From the IMG/VR virus record IMGVR_UViG_3300032288_004964, positions 186,001 through 250,000 of that record: a DNA stretch of 64,000 nt. One strand, given 5' to 3'. Shown in pieces: positions 50,363 to 60,239 of this stretch. Each line of letters begins with the position of its first letter. The first letter of the stretch is position 1. The position numbers and the translations under genes are program-made. The notes beneath the pieces were generated by a model. The model saw nothing but the letters and a program-made list of their open reading frames with translations, searched no databases and had not been told where the DNA came from.

Positions 50363-50450
50363 GGAGAAATGGCAGAGTGGTCGATTGCGGCAGTCTTGAA
50401 AACTGTTGAACCGTGAGGTTCCTGGGGTTCGAATCCCTATTTCTCCGCCA
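50363..50450 (+). tRNA. tRNA-Ser(UGA), canonical type II
   Basis: GGAGAAA/TTTCTCC acceptor, CT-TGA-AA loop, long variable arm, TTCGAAT T-loop, G73 and encoded CCA. Confidence 0.95.
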
Positions 50451-52127: not shown

Positions 52128-52705
52128 TGAAAGATATTAATTATCTATTTGATCTATTAAAGCAATCTAATGTATCTCTTTTAGGATATACATTTAGACA
52201 AGAAAGACTCAAAGACGAGATTATTTCAAAATTACCTCATGTTGTAATTCCGGAAATAGACTCGTCTTTTTCTTTTAAATCTTTTTTAAGAGATTTGAAA
52301 TTAAAATCAATTTTAGAAACTGGAGAGATTGTAAATAATCCAGAGTATTTTGTTTTAGATTTAAATAATATCAGATCTGTTGAGTCTGATATAATTGGTA
52401 GACAAAGACAAATAAAGAGTATTGTAAATAACATTGTGGTGAGTAGCATGTCTATGTCTCATTCTTATAAACTTTTATTACTTACTACACTATATAAAAG
52501 TGGAACTAATACAGATAATTCTGATATTACAAATTTTTCAGGAGGTAGTCAACCAATCTATATGAGTGATATTGCTATTGTAATGAAAGATAAATCTATG
52601 AAGGTAATAAAAAATAGATTTGGTAATGATGGTGATGATATATTAATATCATTTGATAAATTAAAAGAATATAATTACATTTGTAACTATGAACATAACA
52701 ACTAA
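52127..52705 (+). CDS. Hypothetical protein with a DnaB/RecA-like helicase C-terminal-like segment
   Basis: SGGSQPIYMSD...KVIKNRFG; no Walker A motif. Confidence 0.45.
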   Translation: MKDINYLFDLLKQSNVSLLGYTFRQERLKDEIISKLPHVVIPEIDSSFSFKSFLRDLKLKSILETGEIVNNPEYFVLDLNNIRSVESDIIGRQRQIKSIVNNIVVSSMSMSHSYKLLLLTTLYKSGTNTDNSDITNFSGGSQPIYMSDIAIVMKDKSMKVIKNRFGNDGDDILISFDKLKEYNYICNYEHNN

Positions 52706-53123
52706 TAGAAAAGCACATTATGAATTCTCAATACTTCAAGAGTTTGAGGCAGGTATTGTGCTTATAGGAACTGAAGTTAAATCTATTAGAAAAGGTGATG
52801 TAACTATTGGTGATTCCTTTATCTATATTAAAAATGGTGAAGTTTGGGCCAAAAATGTCAAAGTAGCTAAATACAAACAATCTTATTCTGGAGATACTCA
52901 CGATGATAACCGTGATAAAAAACTACTACTAAACAGATCTGAAATTAATAAAATAGAAAAACTTCTTCAAGATAAAGGAGTAACTATTGTTCCCTTAAGT
53001 ATTTTTACTTTAAACAATAAAATCAAAATGAAGATTGCTGTTGTAAAAGGTAAAAAGATGTATGATAAAAGGGAAACTATCAAAAAGAGAGATGTTGAAA
53101 GAGATTTAAGAAGAGTTGCTTAA
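52689..53123 (+). CDS. smpB: SsrA-binding protein SmpB
   Basis: NRKAHYEF...EAGIVLIGTEVKSIR...RDKKLLL...GKKMYDKRETIKKRDVER. Confidence 0.95.
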   Translation: MNITTNRKAHYEFSILQEFEAGIVLIGTEVKSIRKGDVTIGDSFIYIKNGEVWAKNVKVAKYKQSYSGDTHDDNRDKKLLLNRSEINKIEKLLQDKGVTIVPLSIFTLNNKIKMKIAVVKGKKMYDKRETIKKRDVERDLRRVA

Positions 53124-55571: not shown

Positions 55572-55997
55572 ATGACACTAAAAGAAAGAATAAATGCTGA
55601 CTATATTAAAGCATTTAAGGAAAAGAACAGTATTGAAAAGAATTTGCTTTCAGTAGTAAAAGCTGAAATCACTACAATTGAAAAAAATACCTCGGTTGAG
55701 AATCTTTCGGATGCTGATGTTACAAAGATTCTTAATAAAACAGCTAAATCACTGAATGAAACTATTAAATCTTTAACATCTACTGATCATAGTGAAAATT
55801 TAGTACAAGCTTGTATGGAATTGGATATCATTCAAAGTTATCTTCCAAAACAAATGTCTAAAGAAGAAGTTGATGCAAAAGTAAATGAACTTGTTACATC
55901 TGGTATTACTCAAATTGGTGCTATTATGAAAGAATTTGCAACTTTACCAGTCGACAAGAAAATGGTTTCTGAGTCAATAAAAGAAATTGTAAAATAA
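55572..55997 (+). CDS. GatB/YqeY domain protein
   Basis: MTLKERINADYIKAFKEKN...YLPKQMSKEEV...IGAIMK. Confidence 0.85.
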   Translation: MTLKERINADYIKAFKEKNSIEKNLLSVVKAEITTIEKNTSVENLSDADVTKILNKTAKSLNETIKSLTSTDHSENLVQACMELDIIQSYLPKQMSKEEVDAKVNELVTSGITQIGAIMKEFATLPVDKKMVSESIKEIVK

Positions 55998-58774: not shown

Positions 58775-58810
58775 AAGTCCGAACTAAAAAGTTCGGACTT
58801 TTTTGTTTTT
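58775..58810 (+). terminator. Intrinsic terminator (attenuator) directly upstream of the first tRNA
   Basis: AAGTCCGAACT-AAAA-AGTTCGGACTT perfect 11-bp stem plus TTTTGTTTTT, 4 nt before tRNA-His. Confidence 0.85.
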
Positions 58811-58814
58811 ATAT

Positions 58815-58906
58815 GGTATCGTTAATGTTAGCGGTTAGTGTTGAGAAATCAACCAGCATATGGCTCTGTGAAAGCCAAGGGATGGATTCGAATTCCATAC
58901 GATACC
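58815..58906 (+). tRNA. tRNA-His(GUG) with G-1 and a hairpin insertion in the D-loop
   Basis: GGTATCGT/ACGATACC, TGGCT-CTGTGAA-AGCCA, ATGGA-TTCGAAT-TCCAT; D-loop contains GTTGA-GAAA-TCAAC. Confidence 0.85.
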
Positions 58907-58911
58907 CAAAA

Positions 58912-58987
58912 GGAACCTAAGCTAATCAGGTGAAAGCACTAGACTGAAAATCTAGGGAGCCCGGATCGATACCGGGAGGTTCCACCA
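58912..58987 (+). tRNA. tRNA-Phe(GAA)
   Basis: GGAACCT/AGGTTCC, CTAGA-CTGAAAA-TCTAG, CCCGG-ATCGATA-CCGGG, encoded ACCA. Confidence 0.92.
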
Positions 58988-58993
58988 AAATAT

Positions 58994-59067
58994 GGTGTGT
59001 GTAGCTCAATCGGTAGAGCGTTGGTTTGTGGAGCCAAAGGCAGCGGGATCGTAACCCGTCACACACC
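58994..59067 (+). tRNA. tRNA-His(GUG), second copy
   Basis: GGTGTGTG/CACACACC (G-1:C73), GCTC/GAGC D-stem, TTGGT-TTGTGGA-GCCAA, GCGGG-ATCGTAA-CCCGT. Confidence 0.9.
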
Positions 59068-59185
59068 CTGTAAGGATGGTAATCCCCTACTTTGAGTGAA
59101 AAGTAACGATGTGACGACAATCACAGAAGAGTGAAAAGTAACAAAAAAAGTAAAATTGTACTCCTCTCTTGTCGGAGAGGTAAAT

Positions 59186-59256
59186 ACGTCATACAGACAA
59201 GGTGTCGGTCAGGTCTCCAAAACCTCGATGGCTGGGTTCGATTCCTGGATGGCGTG
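59186..59256 (+). tRNA. tRNA-Trp(CCA)
   Basis: ACGTCAT/ATGGCGT acceptor, AGGT-CTCCAAA-ACCT, CTGGG-TTCGATT-CCTGG, G73. Confidence 0.85.
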
Positions 59257-59262
59257 CAAAAA

Positions 59263-59307
59263 ATGAAATATAAAAAAATGAAAACTAAAATGAAATATAA
59301 ACGATAG
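59263..59307 (+). promoter_or_regulatory. Lys-rich mini-ORF MKYKKMKTKMKYKR followed by an 11-bp hairpin, upstream of three tRNA-Lys genes
   Basis: 7 AAA codons in 14; stop TAG overlaps GGCAACGGTTC-ATAC-GGATCGTTGCC (59307-59332). Confidence 0.45.
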
Positions 59308-59345
59308 GCAACGGTTCATACGGATCGTTGCCCAAACAAGACAAT

Positions 59346-59418
59346 GATTCCGTAGCTCAATTGGTGGAGCTTCTGGCTTTTAACCAGAAGGTTGTGGGTT
59401 CAAACCCCACCGGGATCA
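59346..59418 (+). tRNA. tRNA-Lys(UUU), canonical type I
   Basis: GATTCCG/CGGGATC, TCTGG-CTTTTAA-CCAGA, GTGGG-TTCAAAC-CCCAC. Confidence 0.92.
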
Positions 59419-59427
59419 CTAAAAATA

Positions 59428-59512
59428 GATCCTGTCGCTTAGCGGCTATAGCAACTGGCTTTTAACCAGTAGAGAGAAATCTCAACCGTGGGTTCGAGTC
59501 CCACCAGGATCA
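59428..59512 (+). tRNA. tRNA-Lys(UUU) with long variable arm
   Basis: GATCCTG/CAGGATC, ACTGG-CTTTTAA-CCAGT, 17-nt variable region A-GAGA-GAAA-TCTC-AACC. Confidence 0.88.
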
Positions 59513-59517
59513 CTAAA

Positions 59518-59598
59518 GCTTTCGTCGCTTAGTGGCTATAGCAACTGGCTCTTAACCAGTCGAGAAATCAACCGTGGGTTCGAGTCCCACCGAAAGCA
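59518..59598 (+). tRNA. tRNA-Lys(CUU) with extended variable arm
   Basis: GCTTTCG/CGAAAGC, ACTGG-CTCTTAA-CCAGT, 13-nt variable region C-GA-GAAA-TC-AACC. Confidence 0.88.
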
Positions 59599-59607
59599 CA
59601 AATATAT

Positions 59608-59737
59608 GGGGAGTTAGCTCAGTGGTAGAGTATATATAACCTCTTTTGAAATTTTACCTCACAAGAGTGTTGATTAAAAGAGTTACTTCGTTTGAATTGA
59701 AATCAAAAGGTCATAGGTTCGAATCCTATACTCCCCG
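59608..59737 (+). tRNA. Interrupted tRNA-like gene of uncertain identity, with a 58-nt insertion between the D-arm and anticodon arm
   Basis: GGGGAGT/ACTCCCC acceptor, GCTC-AGTGGTA-GAGT D-arm, ATAGG-TTCGAAT-CCTAT T-arm, TTTGA-ATTGAAA-TCAAA arm. Confidence 0.6.
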
Positions 59738-59756
59738 CAAAAAAGAAAAATAAATT

Positions 59757-59831
59757 ATGAAAAATATTAATACATCAAAGTCGTCAAGTAGTCGCTCGTC
59801 AAGAATGAGTGAGATTCGATTGTATTCATAA
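59757..59831 (+). promoter_or_regulatory. Ser/Arg-rich leader peptide MKNINTSKSSSSRSSRMSEIRLYS
   Basis: 24 aa with 9 Ser and 3 Arg codons, upstream of a terminator and tRNA-Arg plus three tRNA-Ser. Confidence 0.8.
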
Positions 59832-59850
59832 TAGTCAGAAGATATTTATG

Positions 59851-59888
59851 AAACCCTCGAATCTAATGATTTGAGGGTTTTTTATTTT
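59851..59888 (+). terminator. Intrinsic terminator (attenuator) directly upstream of tRNA-Arg
   Basis: AAACCCTCGAATC-TAAT-GATTTGAGGGTTT 13-bp stem (one G-U) plus TTTATTTT. Confidence 0.85.
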
Positions 59889-59893
59889 AATAT

Positions 59894-59967
59894 GGTTCCA
59901 TCGTTCAACTGGATAGGACACTCGGCTACGAACCGAGAGATTGGGGATTCGAATTCCTCTGGAACTA
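59894..59967 (+). tRNA. tRNA-Arg(ACG)
   Basis: GGTTCCA/TGGAACT, CTCGG-CTACGAA-CCGAG, GGGGA-TTCGAAT-TCCTC. Confidence 0.92.
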
Positions 59968-59972
59968 CAAAA

Positions 59973-60059
59973 GGAAAAGTAACTTAGCCGGCGCTAAGCA
60001 CAGTCTTGAAAACTGCTGGTACCTACGGGTATGGGGATCGACACCTCACTTTTTCGCCA
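59973..60059 (+). tRNA. tRNA-Ser(UGA), atypical (6-bp D-stem, can fold 8/4)
   Basis: GGAAAAGT/ACTTTTTC, CTTAGC-CGGC-GCTAAG, CAGT-CTTGAAA-ACTG, long variable arm, GCCA end. Confidence 0.85.
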
Positions 60060-60062
60060 AAT

Positions 60063-60148
60063 GGAGAGTAATCTAGTCTGGTGACTAGCACCGCCTGCTA
60101 AGCGTGTGGTACGTTTAATCGTATGGAGTTCAATTCTTCTACTCTCCG
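60063..60148 (+). tRNA. tRNA-Ser(GCU), 8/4 cloverleaf
   Basis: GGAGAGTA/TACTCTCC 8-bp acceptor, GGAG-TTCAATT-CTTC 4-bp T-stem, CTAGTC-TGGT-GACTAG D-arm, CT-GCT-AA loop. Confidence 0.85.
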
Positions 60149-60153
60149 CAAAA

Positions 60154-60239
60154 GGAAGATAATCTAGTCTGGTGACTAGCCACGCCTGGAAAGCGTTGGG
60201 TGCGTTCAATCGCATGGGATTCGATTTCTCTATCTTCCG
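60154..60239 (+). tRNA. tRNA-Ser(GGA), 8/4 cloverleaf
   Basis: GGAAGATA/TATCTTCC 8-bp acceptor, GGGA-TTCGATT-TCTC 4-bp T-stem, same D-arm, CT-GGA-AA loop. Confidence 0.85.

Follow-up and report, generated by a model that had tools for sequence, protein, structure and literature searches.

Can a tRNA that decodes lysine carry a long variable arm and, if so, what is the arm for? Long variable arms normally belong to Leu, Ser, Sec and bacterial Tyr tRNAs. An earlier note on a 64,000-nucleotide stretch of DNA (the window; positions 186,001 to 250,000 of IMG/VR record IMGVR_UViG_3300032288_004964) described two adjacent tRNA-Lys genes, UUU and CUU, with variable regions of 17 and 13 nt, GAAA-capped stems and a 3-bp D stem, next to a canonical tRNA-Lys(UUU). 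It suggested that they might be nuclease-resistant backups or be charged with a different amino acid. Several questions should be addressed in assessing such a claim. Are the genes real? Is the arm that of a class II tRNA? Which amino acid is likely to be attached? Does the hairpin offer protection against the tRNA-cutting defences of bacteria? We now consider these issues. The features of the locus are collected in the table.

Coordinates of the tRNA genes and related features, numbered along the window, with the support for each assignment
Position (strand)	Feature	Support
59428..59513 (+)	tRNA-Lys(UUU) with a hairpin in the variable region (V region 59471-59487; hairpin GAGA-GAAA-UCUC at 59472-59483; 3' tail AACC)	ARAGORN; Rfam tRNA model 62.0 bits; fold; covariation of the stem in 37 homologues
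59518..59599 (+)	tRNA-Lys(CUU) with a short hairpin in the variable region (V region 59561-59573; GA-GAAA-UC at 59562-59569; tail AACC)	ARAGORN; Rfam 60.3 bits; a gene with an identical D arm-to-T arm core (acceptor stem differs) in LR756502; weak fold
59346..59419 (+)	Canonical tRNA-Lys(UUU), 74 nt, 5-nt variable loop, A73	ARAGORN; Rfam 71.8 bits
58775..58800 (+)	Terminator-like hairpin just upstream of the tRNA operon	11 pairs plus a T run
58815..58908 (+)	Probable tRNA-His(GUG) variant (tentative): 8-bp acceptor, D region carrying the hairpin GUUGA-GAAA-UCAAC	Direct reading and fold; Rfam tRNA 25.3 bits, below the gathering score
58912..58987 (+)	tRNA-Phe(GAA)	ARAGORN; Rfam
58995..59068 (+)	tRNA-His(GUG), canonical	ARAGORN; Rfam
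59185..59256 (+)	tRNA-like (tentative), anticodon loop CUCCAAA (Trp CCA)	Weak Rfam hit; fold not significant; relatives (loci L001, L003 and L005) have tRNA-Trp at this position
59609..59741 (+)	tRNA-like gene whose anticodon arm is replaced or expanded by about 77 nt	Partial Rfam hit 30.6 bits; fold; a related strain has a normal Asn(GUU) arm here (a contig in sequencing run X8 replaces 59631-59707 with 19 nt that give GGUGG-UUGUUAA-CCAC(U))
59850..59881 (+)	Terminator-like hairpin closing the Lys-containing tRNA operon	14 pairs plus a T run
59894..59968 (+)	tRNA-Arg(ACG)	ARAGORN; Rfam
59973..60238 (+)	Three tRNA-Ser genes (UGA 59973-60055, GCU 60062-60148, GGA 60154-60238) with an 8-bp acceptor, 6-bp D stem with 4-nt loop, and 4-bp T stem (allo-tRNA / tRNA-Sec-like shape)	Rfam tRNA-Sec model 40.9, 51.3 and 50.0 bits; folds; missed by ARAGORN
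52689..53123 (+)	SmpB (tmRNA partner), part of the phage's translation gene set	Pfam PF01668 E = 1.3e-51; PDB SmpB E = 3e-36
55572..55997 (+)	YqeY-family protein	Pfam PF09424 E = 2e-19

The observation is confirmed. Both Lys genes score well above the gathering score of 29 for the Rfam tRNA model (RF00005), which places the extra bases as one insertion in the variable region. By direct reading the variable regions are AGAGAGAAAUCUCAACC in the UUU gene, with a 4-bp stem, and CGAGAAAUCAACC in the CUU gene, where the stem is of 2 bp only. The D stem has three pairs plus a U13-U22 mismatch. The anticodon loops, CUUUUAA and CUCUUAA, are of 7 nt with U33 and A37, and the discriminator is A73, as in bacterial tRNA-Lys, in both genes. 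The minimum-free-energy fold of the UUU gene is the cloverleaf plus the extra hairpin (z = -3.9, with none of 200 shuffles as good), whilst the CUU gene folds less convincingly (z = -1.8). Independent metagenome contigs from other studies cover both genes, in a comparison restricted to DNA contigs and to 1,501 nucleotides, and no difference is listed inside 59428-59598, so that an assembly error is unlikely.

The hairpin is under selection. In an alignment of 37 distinct homologues from related phages the variable stem is 90% paired, all four pairs show changes on both sides, and none of 500 shuffles reaches the observed score. Sliding the partner columns drops the pairing to 33-48%. This is far more than chance. 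The alignment, made with MAFFT and without a covariance model, is out by one column for a subclade with a 3-nt tail, which slightly lowers the pairing figure. The stem and loop sequences are not conserved. Loops include GAAA, GCAA, GAGA, UUUU, AUUA and longer ones, although GNRA loops are frequent. The sequence drifts freely but the pairing is maintained, which suggests that shape is what matters.

Might the genes have no use in translation, serving as decoys that soak up a nuclease or simply decaying as pseudogenes? GenBank labels the homologous Asn gene of Cellulophaga phage phi4:1 'tRNA-OTHER / tRNA-Pseudo', the same operon holds the clearly aberrant tRNA-like genes at 59609-59741 and 59185-59256, and competition for the nuclease has been raised as a possibility (PMC12409363). 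However, all stems are intact, the conserved tRNA bases are present (A14, G18G19, U33 and the T loop), identity elements are retained, the sequence is conserved across independent samples and there is strong compensatory evolution in the anticodon, T and variable stems. We consider this reading very unlikely.

Of the criteria by which a class II tRNA may be recognised, the two genes satisfy one, a variable region of over 10 nt forming a stem-loop, and fail two others, the arm geometry and the identity. The arm has one unpaired 5' nt, a stem of 3-4 bp, a 4-nt loop and four unpaired 3' nt. In the same phages Ser tRNAs have 1 nt / 5 bp / 4 nt / 1 nt and Leu tRNAs 0 / 4 bp / 4 / 1. Four unpaired 3' nt are found in 25 of 38 Lys and 10 of 10 Asn genes, as against one in 15 of 19 Ser and 11 of 15 Leu genes. 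The description 'type II-like' in the earlier note holds only on the surface. The arm looks like a hairpin inserted after nucleotide 44 of an ordinary 5-nt class I loop.

The note's alternative of charging with another amino acid is disfavoured. In its favour, the genes have a long variable region, a 3-bp D stem and A73, which is also the Leu and Tyr discriminator, SerRS and LeuRS do not read the anticodon, and there are precedents in nematode nev-tRNAs and bacterial allo-tRNAs with non-cognate anticodons (PMC3333845, PMC7609411). Yet the discriminator follows the anticodon class rather than one class II identity. A73 is present in both genes and in 33 of 38 homologues, with U73 in a subclade that encodes CCA. 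Hairpin Asn keeps G73 and U1-A72, hairpin Thr keeps U73, G1-C72 and C2-G71, and hairpin Gln keeps U1-A72 and, in most cases, G73. Cognate signatures are kept in hairpin Ile also. There is no consistent Ser (G2-C71, A3-U70), phage Leu (G1-U72, C2-G71) or Tyr (GGG/CCC) acceptor signature. Lysines encoded by AAA and AAG align with conserved lysines in SmpB, and Lys(CUU) is almost always the only phage AAG reader (15 of 16), so that mischarging would damage the phage's own proteins. Charging with Ser, Leu or Tyr is thus improbable, and charging with Lys by the host enzyme likely, although aminoacylation was not assayed. A reassigned genetic code was considered and rejected, since code 11, the only code used in this work, already gives dense ORFs and the SmpB lysines are conserved; there is, however, a tRNA(CUA) gene at 370132-370204 of the phage genome sequence (G000).

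The genes belong to a 385-kb, 28.7% GC freshwater phage that carries about 41 tRNA genes. An orthogonal, phage-encoded partner was sought and not found. PF00152, PF00587 and PF01921 are all absent from a genome estimated as 95% complete, so that there is no class II or class I LysRS core and no AsnRS or ThrRS core; of the synthetases only GluRS and GlnRS are present. RtcB-type repair is absent, and an RNA-ligase family hit is weak at 32.7 bits and was not pursued. The genome also encodes a CCA-adding enzyme (G000 383124-383492), a PP-loop TilS-like protein, a NUDIX-kinase fusion, YqeY and SmpB. This wealth of tRNA-directed proteins raises the possibility that the hairpin marks the tRNA as phage-owned, either as a handle for a phage enzyme (the CCA-adding enzyme, TilS-like or YqeY-like protein, GluRS or GlnRS; a hairpin Glu tRNA could pair with the phage GluRS) or to spare it from a phage nuclease that destroys host tRNAs during takeover. 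We judge this unlikely. The stem and loop sequences vary, and phages of very different gene content carry the design, including T5-like phages and phiKZ, which has only about six tRNA genes, a number not checked here. A shared, dedicated partner is therefore unlikely.

An argument from Lys alone, as in the earlier note, is too narrow. In this genome and its relatives the same design occurs in Asn, Thr(UGU), Gln, Glu, Met and Ile tRNAs. In the sampled loci the hairpin is present in Lys CUU 15/16, Lys UUU 23/38, Asn 10/21 and Thr UGU 4/11, and in none of the Ala, Arg, Asp, Gln, Gly, His, Phe, Pro or Trp genes. In the fuller inventories of three relatives it is also present in Gln(UUG) in all three, and in Glu, Met and Ile in one or two. 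Cultured phages carry it: phiKZ Asn, XacN1 Lys(CUU), about 100 T5-like Thr(UGU) records and about 590 Asn records. T5 itself is not a carrier, as its Thr, Lys and Asn genes are normal in length; an 87-nt Thr belongs to its relatives. These numbers derive from pattern searches, which carry a sampling bias, and not from a collection-wide census. The design is nearly absent from cellular genomes. A single scan of 185,579 species genomes returned mostly Leu(UAA), intron-bearing archaeal Lys genes and tmRNA ends, with only six true hairpin Lys(CUU) genes, all in dense tRNA arrays. The pattern fixed one T arm, so this count is a lower bound.

The distribution bears on the main rival, that these are ordinary codon-supply tRNAs and the hairpin a tolerated passenger, fixed at a site that accepts extra length, spread by duplication, anticodon shifts and horizontal transfer, and kept paired only because an unpaired insert would disturb folding. 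The D loop and variable region, where the inserts sit, are the length-tolerant sites of tRNA. The duplicated isoacceptors match the most used codons of the phage (AAT 62, AAA 61, GAT 58 and GAA 47 per 1000). Hairpin Asn and one family of hairpin Lys share a 93% identical core, so part of the spread is common descent, and we caution that covariation proves only that the tRNA must fold. Against this, the design persists in unrelated phage groups and hosts (phiKZ, XacN1, phi4:1, T5-like, Klebsiella T4-like and freshwater megaphages), keeps a fixed geometry of 1 nt, stem, 4-nt loop and 4 nt, and is confined to a recurring subset of isoacceptors. A neutral insert should be lost often and should scatter across isoacceptors. 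The passenger explanation is possible but appears the less likely.

Does the hairpin protect the tRNA? Lys(UUU), Thr(UGU) and Asn(GUU) are the targets of PARIS AriB, which cuts at 40/41. Its model also contacts D-loop positions 16-17, and restoring the cleavage site alone does not restore cutting (PMC12409363). RorSlfn5 and PrrC also prefer tRNA-Lys(UUU) (PMC13056530, PMC10264068). The genes are therefore phage-encoded copies of an isoacceptor that defence tRNases attack. Whether they differ from the host tRNA at the recognition elements is left undecided by what was observed. The hairpin Lys has C16, no U17 and C39 C40 A41, but the canonical phage copy also has C39 C40 A41, and neither the host nor its defence systems are known. 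Indirect support comes from phage Bas33 (HildyBeyeler). In the 18 kb around its tRNA cluster, the only part of that genome read, the only Thr(UGU) and Asn(GUU) genes, of 87 and 86 nt, are hairpin-type and keep the AriB site, U36AAUC|A41 and U36AAUC|C41 respectively. T5 tRNA-Lys alone is reported to rescue Bas33 from PARIS, whereas T7 needs Lys plus Thr, which suggests that the Bas33 Thr and Asn tRNAs survive AriB. This joins a published phenotype to our sequence reading, and the hairpin was not tested by those authors. Bas34 (SelmaRatti) needed all three T5 tRNAs although it encodes its own Asn, a gene that we did not examine. Further points weigh against protection. Loop-directed nucleases such as PrrC accept isolated anticodon stem-loops, which a variable-arm hairpin would not shield; the phage retains a canonical Lys(UUU); the hairpin also occurs in Glu, Gln, Met and Ile tRNAs, which are not known AriB targets; and the CUU hairpin has two pairs only.

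The explanation we favour, though with no more than even confidence, is that both genes are working lysine tRNAs, co-transcribed in an operon (58815-59881) bracketed by terminator-like hairpins, finished at the 3' end by the phage CCA-adding enzyme, charged by the host lysyl-tRNA synthetase and reading AAA, the second most used codon of the phage, and AAG. The tRNA core would stay class I-like. The most likely role of the hairpin is steric, making the phage copy a poor substrate for enzymes that dock on the body of the tRNA, such as the AriB dimer, while synthetase, EF-Tu and ribosome still accept it. D-loop hairpins, 8/4-shaped Ser tRNAs and arm-less Leu tRNAs in this genome and its relatives could serve the same purpose. 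The analysis itself demonstrates the genes, their structure, its conservation and distribution, the retention of cognate identity elements and the absence of a phage LysRS, whereas charging with Lys, decoding and, above all, protection from nucleases are inferences; no RNA run contained the locus, and there are no expression, aminoacylation or cleavage data for these genes. The interpretation in the earlier note is thus partly supported: the anatomy and the class to which long arms normally belong were right, and the nuclease-resistant backup survives as a plausible but unproven idea, which gains indirect support from the overlap with AriB targets and from the Bas33 case.

A bolder and more doubtful proposal is that hairpins added to the variable or D loop, and the reverse case of arm-less Leu tRNAs, are a general, so far unrecognised phage counter-defence in which the change of shape, rather than point substitutions at the cleavage site, hides phage tRNAs from body-reading tRNases such as the AriB Toprim dimer, while host synthetases and ribosomes still use them. 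Bas33 Thr(UGU) and Asn(GUU) would then be the first worked example, and the Lys genes the same device applied to the most attacked tRNA. If the hairpin blocks defence nucleases it is a new structural route of immune evasion, would explain why phages carry apparently redundant tRNA copies, and would give tRNA engineers a natural scaffold that synthetases accept and nucleases may not. A class I core with an inserted hairpin is a further, recurrent tRNA design, common in phages, including model phages such as phiKZ and T5 relatives. Literature searches found no description of phage Lys, Asn or Thr tRNAs with long arms, although a prior mention is not excluded, and annotation would benefit because such genes are now labelled 'tRNA-OTHER/Pseudo' or missed.

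Comparisons with known systems are informative. The class II tRNAs (bacterial Leu, Ser, Tyr and Sec) share a stem-loop in the variable region and a 3-bp D stem with position 13-22 unpaired, but the anticodons here are Lys, the unpaired bases of the arm total five, as in a class I loop, and the acceptor signatures are not those of Ser, Leu or Tyr. Nematode nev-tRNAs (PMC3333845) also combine a long variable arm with the anticodon of a class I amino acid. They are eukaryotic and, according to the title of the paper ('decode an alternative genetic code for leucine'), linked to leucine, whereas here the acceptor identity follows the anticodon, which argues for cognate charging. The allo-tRNAs and selC-like tRNAs (Mukai et al. 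2017, reviewed in PMC7609411) are non-canonical bacterial cloverleaves with a long variable arm and unexpected anticodons, serylated, in the case of allo-tRNAs, whatever the anticodon. Their 12-bp acceptor/T domain, in 8/4 or 9/3 form, and long D stem are not found in the Lys genes, which have a normal 7/5 domain and a normal D loop, but the three neighbouring Ser genes do fit, in the 8/4 form and with a 6-bp D stem.

Homologous hairpin tRNAs are already deposited, apparently without comment, for phiKZ tRNA-Asn (NC_004629 269557-269645), XacN1 tRNA-Lys(CUU) (AP018399 30565-30651), the phi4:1 'tRNA-OTHER' and T5-like tRNA-Thr and tRNA-Asn (e.g. Bas33, MZ501074). None of the papers searched mentions the arm. 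These tRNAs involve other isoacceptors, hosts and phage families, yet display the same insert geometry of 1 nt, a 3-4 bp stem, usually a GNRA loop, then a tail of 3-4 nt (CACC and CAUC in phiKZ and XacN1; AAA and CGUU in Bas33 Asn and Thr). Phage T5 tRNA-Lys(UUU), Thr(UGU) and Asn(GUU), which neutralise PARIS/AriB (PMC11464382, PMC12409363), are likewise phage-encoded copies of the same isoacceptors, kept beside the host's tRNAs and proposed or shown to withstand a defence tRNase, a property not measured here for the Lys genes. The T5 copies escape through base substitutions at 39, 41 and 16, whereas the genes described here carry a structural insert, and the hairpin Thr and Asn of Bas33 even keep the AriB site.

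The window, bases 186001-250000, lies within a single 385,333-bp IMG/VR virus record that is estimated to be 95% complete. Its GC content is 28.7% and the standard bacterial code reads it well; no alternative genetic code was used in the analysis. The nearest public records are uncultured huge phages of 634-642 kb, LR745206 and LR756502. Near-identical DNA occurs in freshwater, plankton, groundwater and aquatic metagenomes from about ten studies, although none of those runs is RNA.

ARAGORN identifies three adjacent lysine tRNA genes of 74, 86 and 82 nt, and the Rfam tRNA model scores them 71.8, 62.0 and 60.3 bits, respectively, against a threshold of 29. In the two long genes the model places all of the extra bases as one insertion in the variable region. 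The variable regions are AGAGAGAAAUCUCAACC (17 nt, hairpin GAGA-GAAA-UCUC) in the UUU gene and CGAGAAAUCAACC (13 nt, only GA-GAAA-UC) in the CUU gene. The D stem has three pairs plus a U13-U22 mismatch, the discriminator is A73 and no CCA is encoded. The long UUU gene folds by itself into a cloverleaf plus hairpin (z = -3.9), while the CUU gene is weaker (z = -1.8). Contigs from independent metagenomes cover both genes with no listed difference inside them. The earlier note had described two tRNA-Lys genes with long variable arms beside a canonical tRNA-Lys(UUU), and that description is accurate.

Pattern scans of IMG/VR and the two GenBank megaphages gave 38 distinct long Lys tRNAs, counting the two in this window, from about 20 phage contigs of 4-635 kb. 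Alignment of 37 of these reveals that the variable stem is 90% paired and that all four pairs change on both sides; the third pair, for example, is GC 14, AU 6, CG 6. None of 500 shuffles reaches the observed scores and sliding the partner columns drops pairing to 33-48%. The loops are mostly GNRA but also UUUU, AUUA and longer, so it is the pairing that is conserved rather than the sequence. Within the set a subclade of hairpin Lys(UUU) and Lys(CUU) genes (IMG/VR contigs L006, L008, L010-L012 and L014) encodes CCA, has U73 instead of A73 and has a 3-nt tail after the hairpin. The amino-acid identity of these is less certain than for the A73 genes.

The arm is not that of a true class II tRNA. 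In Lys (25/38) and Asn (10/10) the insert has one unpaired 5′ base, a 3-4 bp stem, a 4-nt loop and four unpaired 3′ bases, typically CAYC or AACC and ending in C48 opposite G15. The Ser and Leu tRNAs of the same phages leave one unpaired 3′ base. One plus four unpaired bases make up the ordinary 5-nt class I loop, and the simplest description is a hairpin inserted after nucleotide 44 of a class I tRNA. Arm orientation is what SerRS, LeuRS and TyrRS distinguish, and so this geometry argues against recognition by those enzymes.

The design is not confined to Lys. The same genome has Glu(UUC) with a hairpin (ACAUC-GAAA-GAUGU), Asn(GUU) with a hairpin and Thr(UGU) with a 12-13-nt variable region but no clear stem, and each has a canonical twin elsewhere in the genome. 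Other expanded tRNAs in this genome are Gly(UCC), Cys(GCA) and Pro(UGG) with hairpins in the D loop, and a tRNA(CAU) with an insert in the anticodon loop. Across 318 distinct tRNAs from the sampled loci, variable regions of 12 nt or more occur in Lys CUU (15/16), Lys UUU (23/38), Asn (10/21), Thr UGU (4/11), Val UAC (2/11), Ile GAU (2/12), Cys (1/7), Glu (1/12) and Met (1/13), and in none of the Ala, Arg, Asp, Gln, Gly, His, Phe, Pro or Trp tRNAs. We note that this sampling favours Lys and Asn because the search patterns were built on them. Near-complete tRNA inventories of three relatives (53-58 ARAGORN genes each) give a similar list. Lys UUU, Lys CUU and Asn are long in all three, as is Gln(UUG) although none was seen in the sampled loci. 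Thr(UGU) is long in two, and Glu, Met and Ile in one or two. The reverse oddity also occurs, in the megaphage relatives and in Bas33, where tRNA-Leu genes have a class I shape. All bacterial tRNA-Leu are normally long-armed.

The design also occurs in cultured phages. Examples are the tRNA-Asn of phiKZ (annotated at 89 nt), the tRNA-Lys(CUU) of XacN1 (87 nt), the Asn of Cellulophaga phage phi4:1, labelled ‘tRNA-OTHER / tRNA-Pseudo’, an 87-nt Thr(UGU) in about 100 T5-like records and 83-86-nt Asn homologues in 587 records, including Klebsiella T4-like and rV5-like phages. T5 itself has Thr, Lys and Asn genes of normal length. In 185,579 species genomes a pattern for hairpin Lys(CUU) hit only six true cases, all in dense arrays of 3-29 tRNA genes on contigs of metagenome-assembled genomes that are mostly alphaproteobacterial. 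Such arrays (contigs L035, L043, L101, L119, L041 and L113), on alphaproteobacterial, Coxiellaceae and other metagenome-assembled genomes, have up to 29 genes in 2.7 kb and contain hairpin Lys(CUU), a 94-nt Lys(UUU) and an 85-nt Asn. They may be prophages or mobile arrays. The design therefore belongs to phage and mobile tRNA sets, not to housekeeping sets. We found no description of it in the searchable literature, although many members already sit in GenBank.

In the window, two terminator-like hairpins bracket an operon that holds a probable tRNA-His with a D-region hairpin, then Phe, His, a Trp-like gene, the three Lys genes and an aberrant Asn-derived gene. The last of these could be the product of an insertion or a replacement, or a decaying gene, and is unexplained. 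A second unit carries Arg(ACG) and three Ser tRNAs that have the 8/4 shape of allo-tRNAs and resemble tRNA-Sec. The homologue in LR745206 has the ordinary 7/5 shape. The phage thus repeatedly pairs a canonical tRNA with a copy of different shape. That fits shape-based evasion, but it would also fit relaxed constraint on redundant copies.

Coordinates of the tRNA genes and associated features (window positions unless marked; G000 C1, the whole virus record; L numbers, individual loci)
Location	Strand	Feature	Observations
58775-58800		Terminator-like hairpin	
58815-58908	+	Probable second tRNA-His(GUG)	8-bp acceptor; GAAA-capped hairpin GUUGA-GAAA-UCAAC in the D region; just upstream of a canonical His gene; Rfam only 25.3 bits
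59346-59419		tRNA-Lys(UUU)	74 nt
59428-59513		tRNA-Lys(UUU)	86 nt
59518-59599		tRNA-Lys(CUU)	82 nt
59609-59741	+	tRNA-like gene	Acceptor, D and T arms intact; about 77 nt where the anticodon arm should be, ending in a stem-loop with anticodon UGA; a contig from another metagenome (run X8) has 19 nt there instead, which restore a normal Asn(GUU) arm
59850-59881		Terminator-like hairpin	
59973-60055, 60062-60148, 60154-60238	+	Three tRNA-Ser genes (UGA, GCU, GGA)	8-bp acceptor stem, 6-bp D stem with 4-nt loop, 4-bp T stem; match the Rfam tRNA-Sec model better than its tRNA model; missed by ARAGORN
50363-50450		Canonical tRNA-Ser(UGA)	
52689-53123		SmpB	
55572-55997		YqeY-like protein	
G000 C1:257051-257133, 262751-262833, 271470-271555 (L127, L128, L129)		tRNA-Gly(UCC), Cys(GCA) and Pro(UGG)	Short D-loop hairpins GGC-GAAA-GCC, GUC-GAAA-GAC and UCC-GUAU-GGA; all score 56-61 bits with the tRNA model; canonical Gly(UCC) and Pro(UGG) copies nearby
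G000 C1:254407-254502 (L127:108-203)		tRNA(CAU)	96 nt; about 23 extra nt in the anticodon loop (an intron-like insert); Rfam 54.8 bits
G000 C1:370132-370204 (L131)		tRNA with anticodon CUA	Amber suppressor type; labelled ‘Pyl’ by ARAGORN
G000 C1:264465-265922, 271877-273511, 259730-260317, 278396-279478, 383124-383492, 154209-154673		GluRS, GlnRS, TilS-like PP-loop protein, NUDIX plus AAA_33 kinase fusion, CCA-adding enzyme, RNA-ligase family protein	GlnRS is next to the two tRNA-Gln genes
L143:3527, L147:2080/3020/3267, L156:2082/2349/2933, L164:1829/6791		tRNA-Leu genes (UAA, UAG, CAA)	Variable loop of only 4-6 nt; A73 kept, except that one of the nine, L143:3527, has U73

Which amino acid is attached to the hairpin Lys tRNAs? 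The phage has no class II (PF00152) or class I (PF01921) LysRS core and no PF00587 core, although it does encode GluRS and GlnRS. A host enzyme must therefore charge the Lys genes. The identity elements follow the anticodon. Hairpin Lys keeps A73 (33/38), hairpin Asn keeps G73 (10/10) and U1-A72 (9/10), hairpin Thr keeps U73, G1-C72 and C2-G71 (4/4), hairpin Gln keeps U1-A72 (3/3) and G73 (2/3), and hairpin Ile keeps A73. None carries the phage Ser, Leu or Tyr acceptor pattern. Hairpin Asn and one family of hairpin Lys share a 93% identical core but differ in acceptor stem and discriminator, the pattern expected if selection keeps cognate charging after an anticodon shift. Lysines encoded by AAA/AAG align with conserved lysines of SmpB, and AAA is the second most used codon at 61 per 1000. 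The genome has a tRNA with anticodon CUA, but treating TAG as sense lengthens ORFs only slightly (321 to 336 kb), so genome-wide recoding is not evident. We conclude that the Lys genes are lysine-accepting decoders; whereas the genes and their retained identity elements are observed directly, this conclusion is inferred and not demonstrated. Charging with a different amino acid, one of two possibilities raised in the earlier note, is unlikely.

The other possibility, that these tRNAs are nuclease-resistant backups, is the best-supported functional reading, though we regard it as only about as likely as not, and its main rival is a neutral, tolerated insertion. The interpretation offered in the earlier note is supported only in part. 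tRNA-Lys(UUU) is the preferred target of several defence nucleases, namely PrrC, AriB of PARIS and the bacterial Schlafen RorSlfn5. The validated targets of AriB are Lys(UUU), Thr(UGU) and Asn(GUU), the three isoacceptors that most often carry the hairpin. AriB cuts between positions 40 and 41, three to four bases before the insertion point, and an AlphaFold 3 model places the second subunit on D-loop bases 16-17. A U16-to-C change impairs cutting. Restoring the cleavage site in T5 tRNA-Lys does not restore cutting, so features of the tRNA body matter (PMC12409363).

The strongest indirect support comes from comparison with Bas33 (phage HildyBeyeler, MZ501074). In the 18-kb stretch around its tRNA cluster that we read, the only Thr(UGU) and Asn(GUU) genes are hairpin-type, and both still carry the AriB motifs, U36AAUC|A41 and U36AAUC|C41. 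No Lys(UUU) gene is present there. T5 tRNA-Lys alone is reported to rescue Bas33 from PARIS, whereas T7 needs Lys plus Thr (PMC12409363). Together these facts suggest that hairpin Thr and Asn tRNAs work in E. coli and are not depleted by AriB despite an intact site, with the caveat that the authors of that study did not test this and that Bas34, which needed all three T5 tRNAs, was not examined here. That leaves the hairpin as the obvious candidate for protection.
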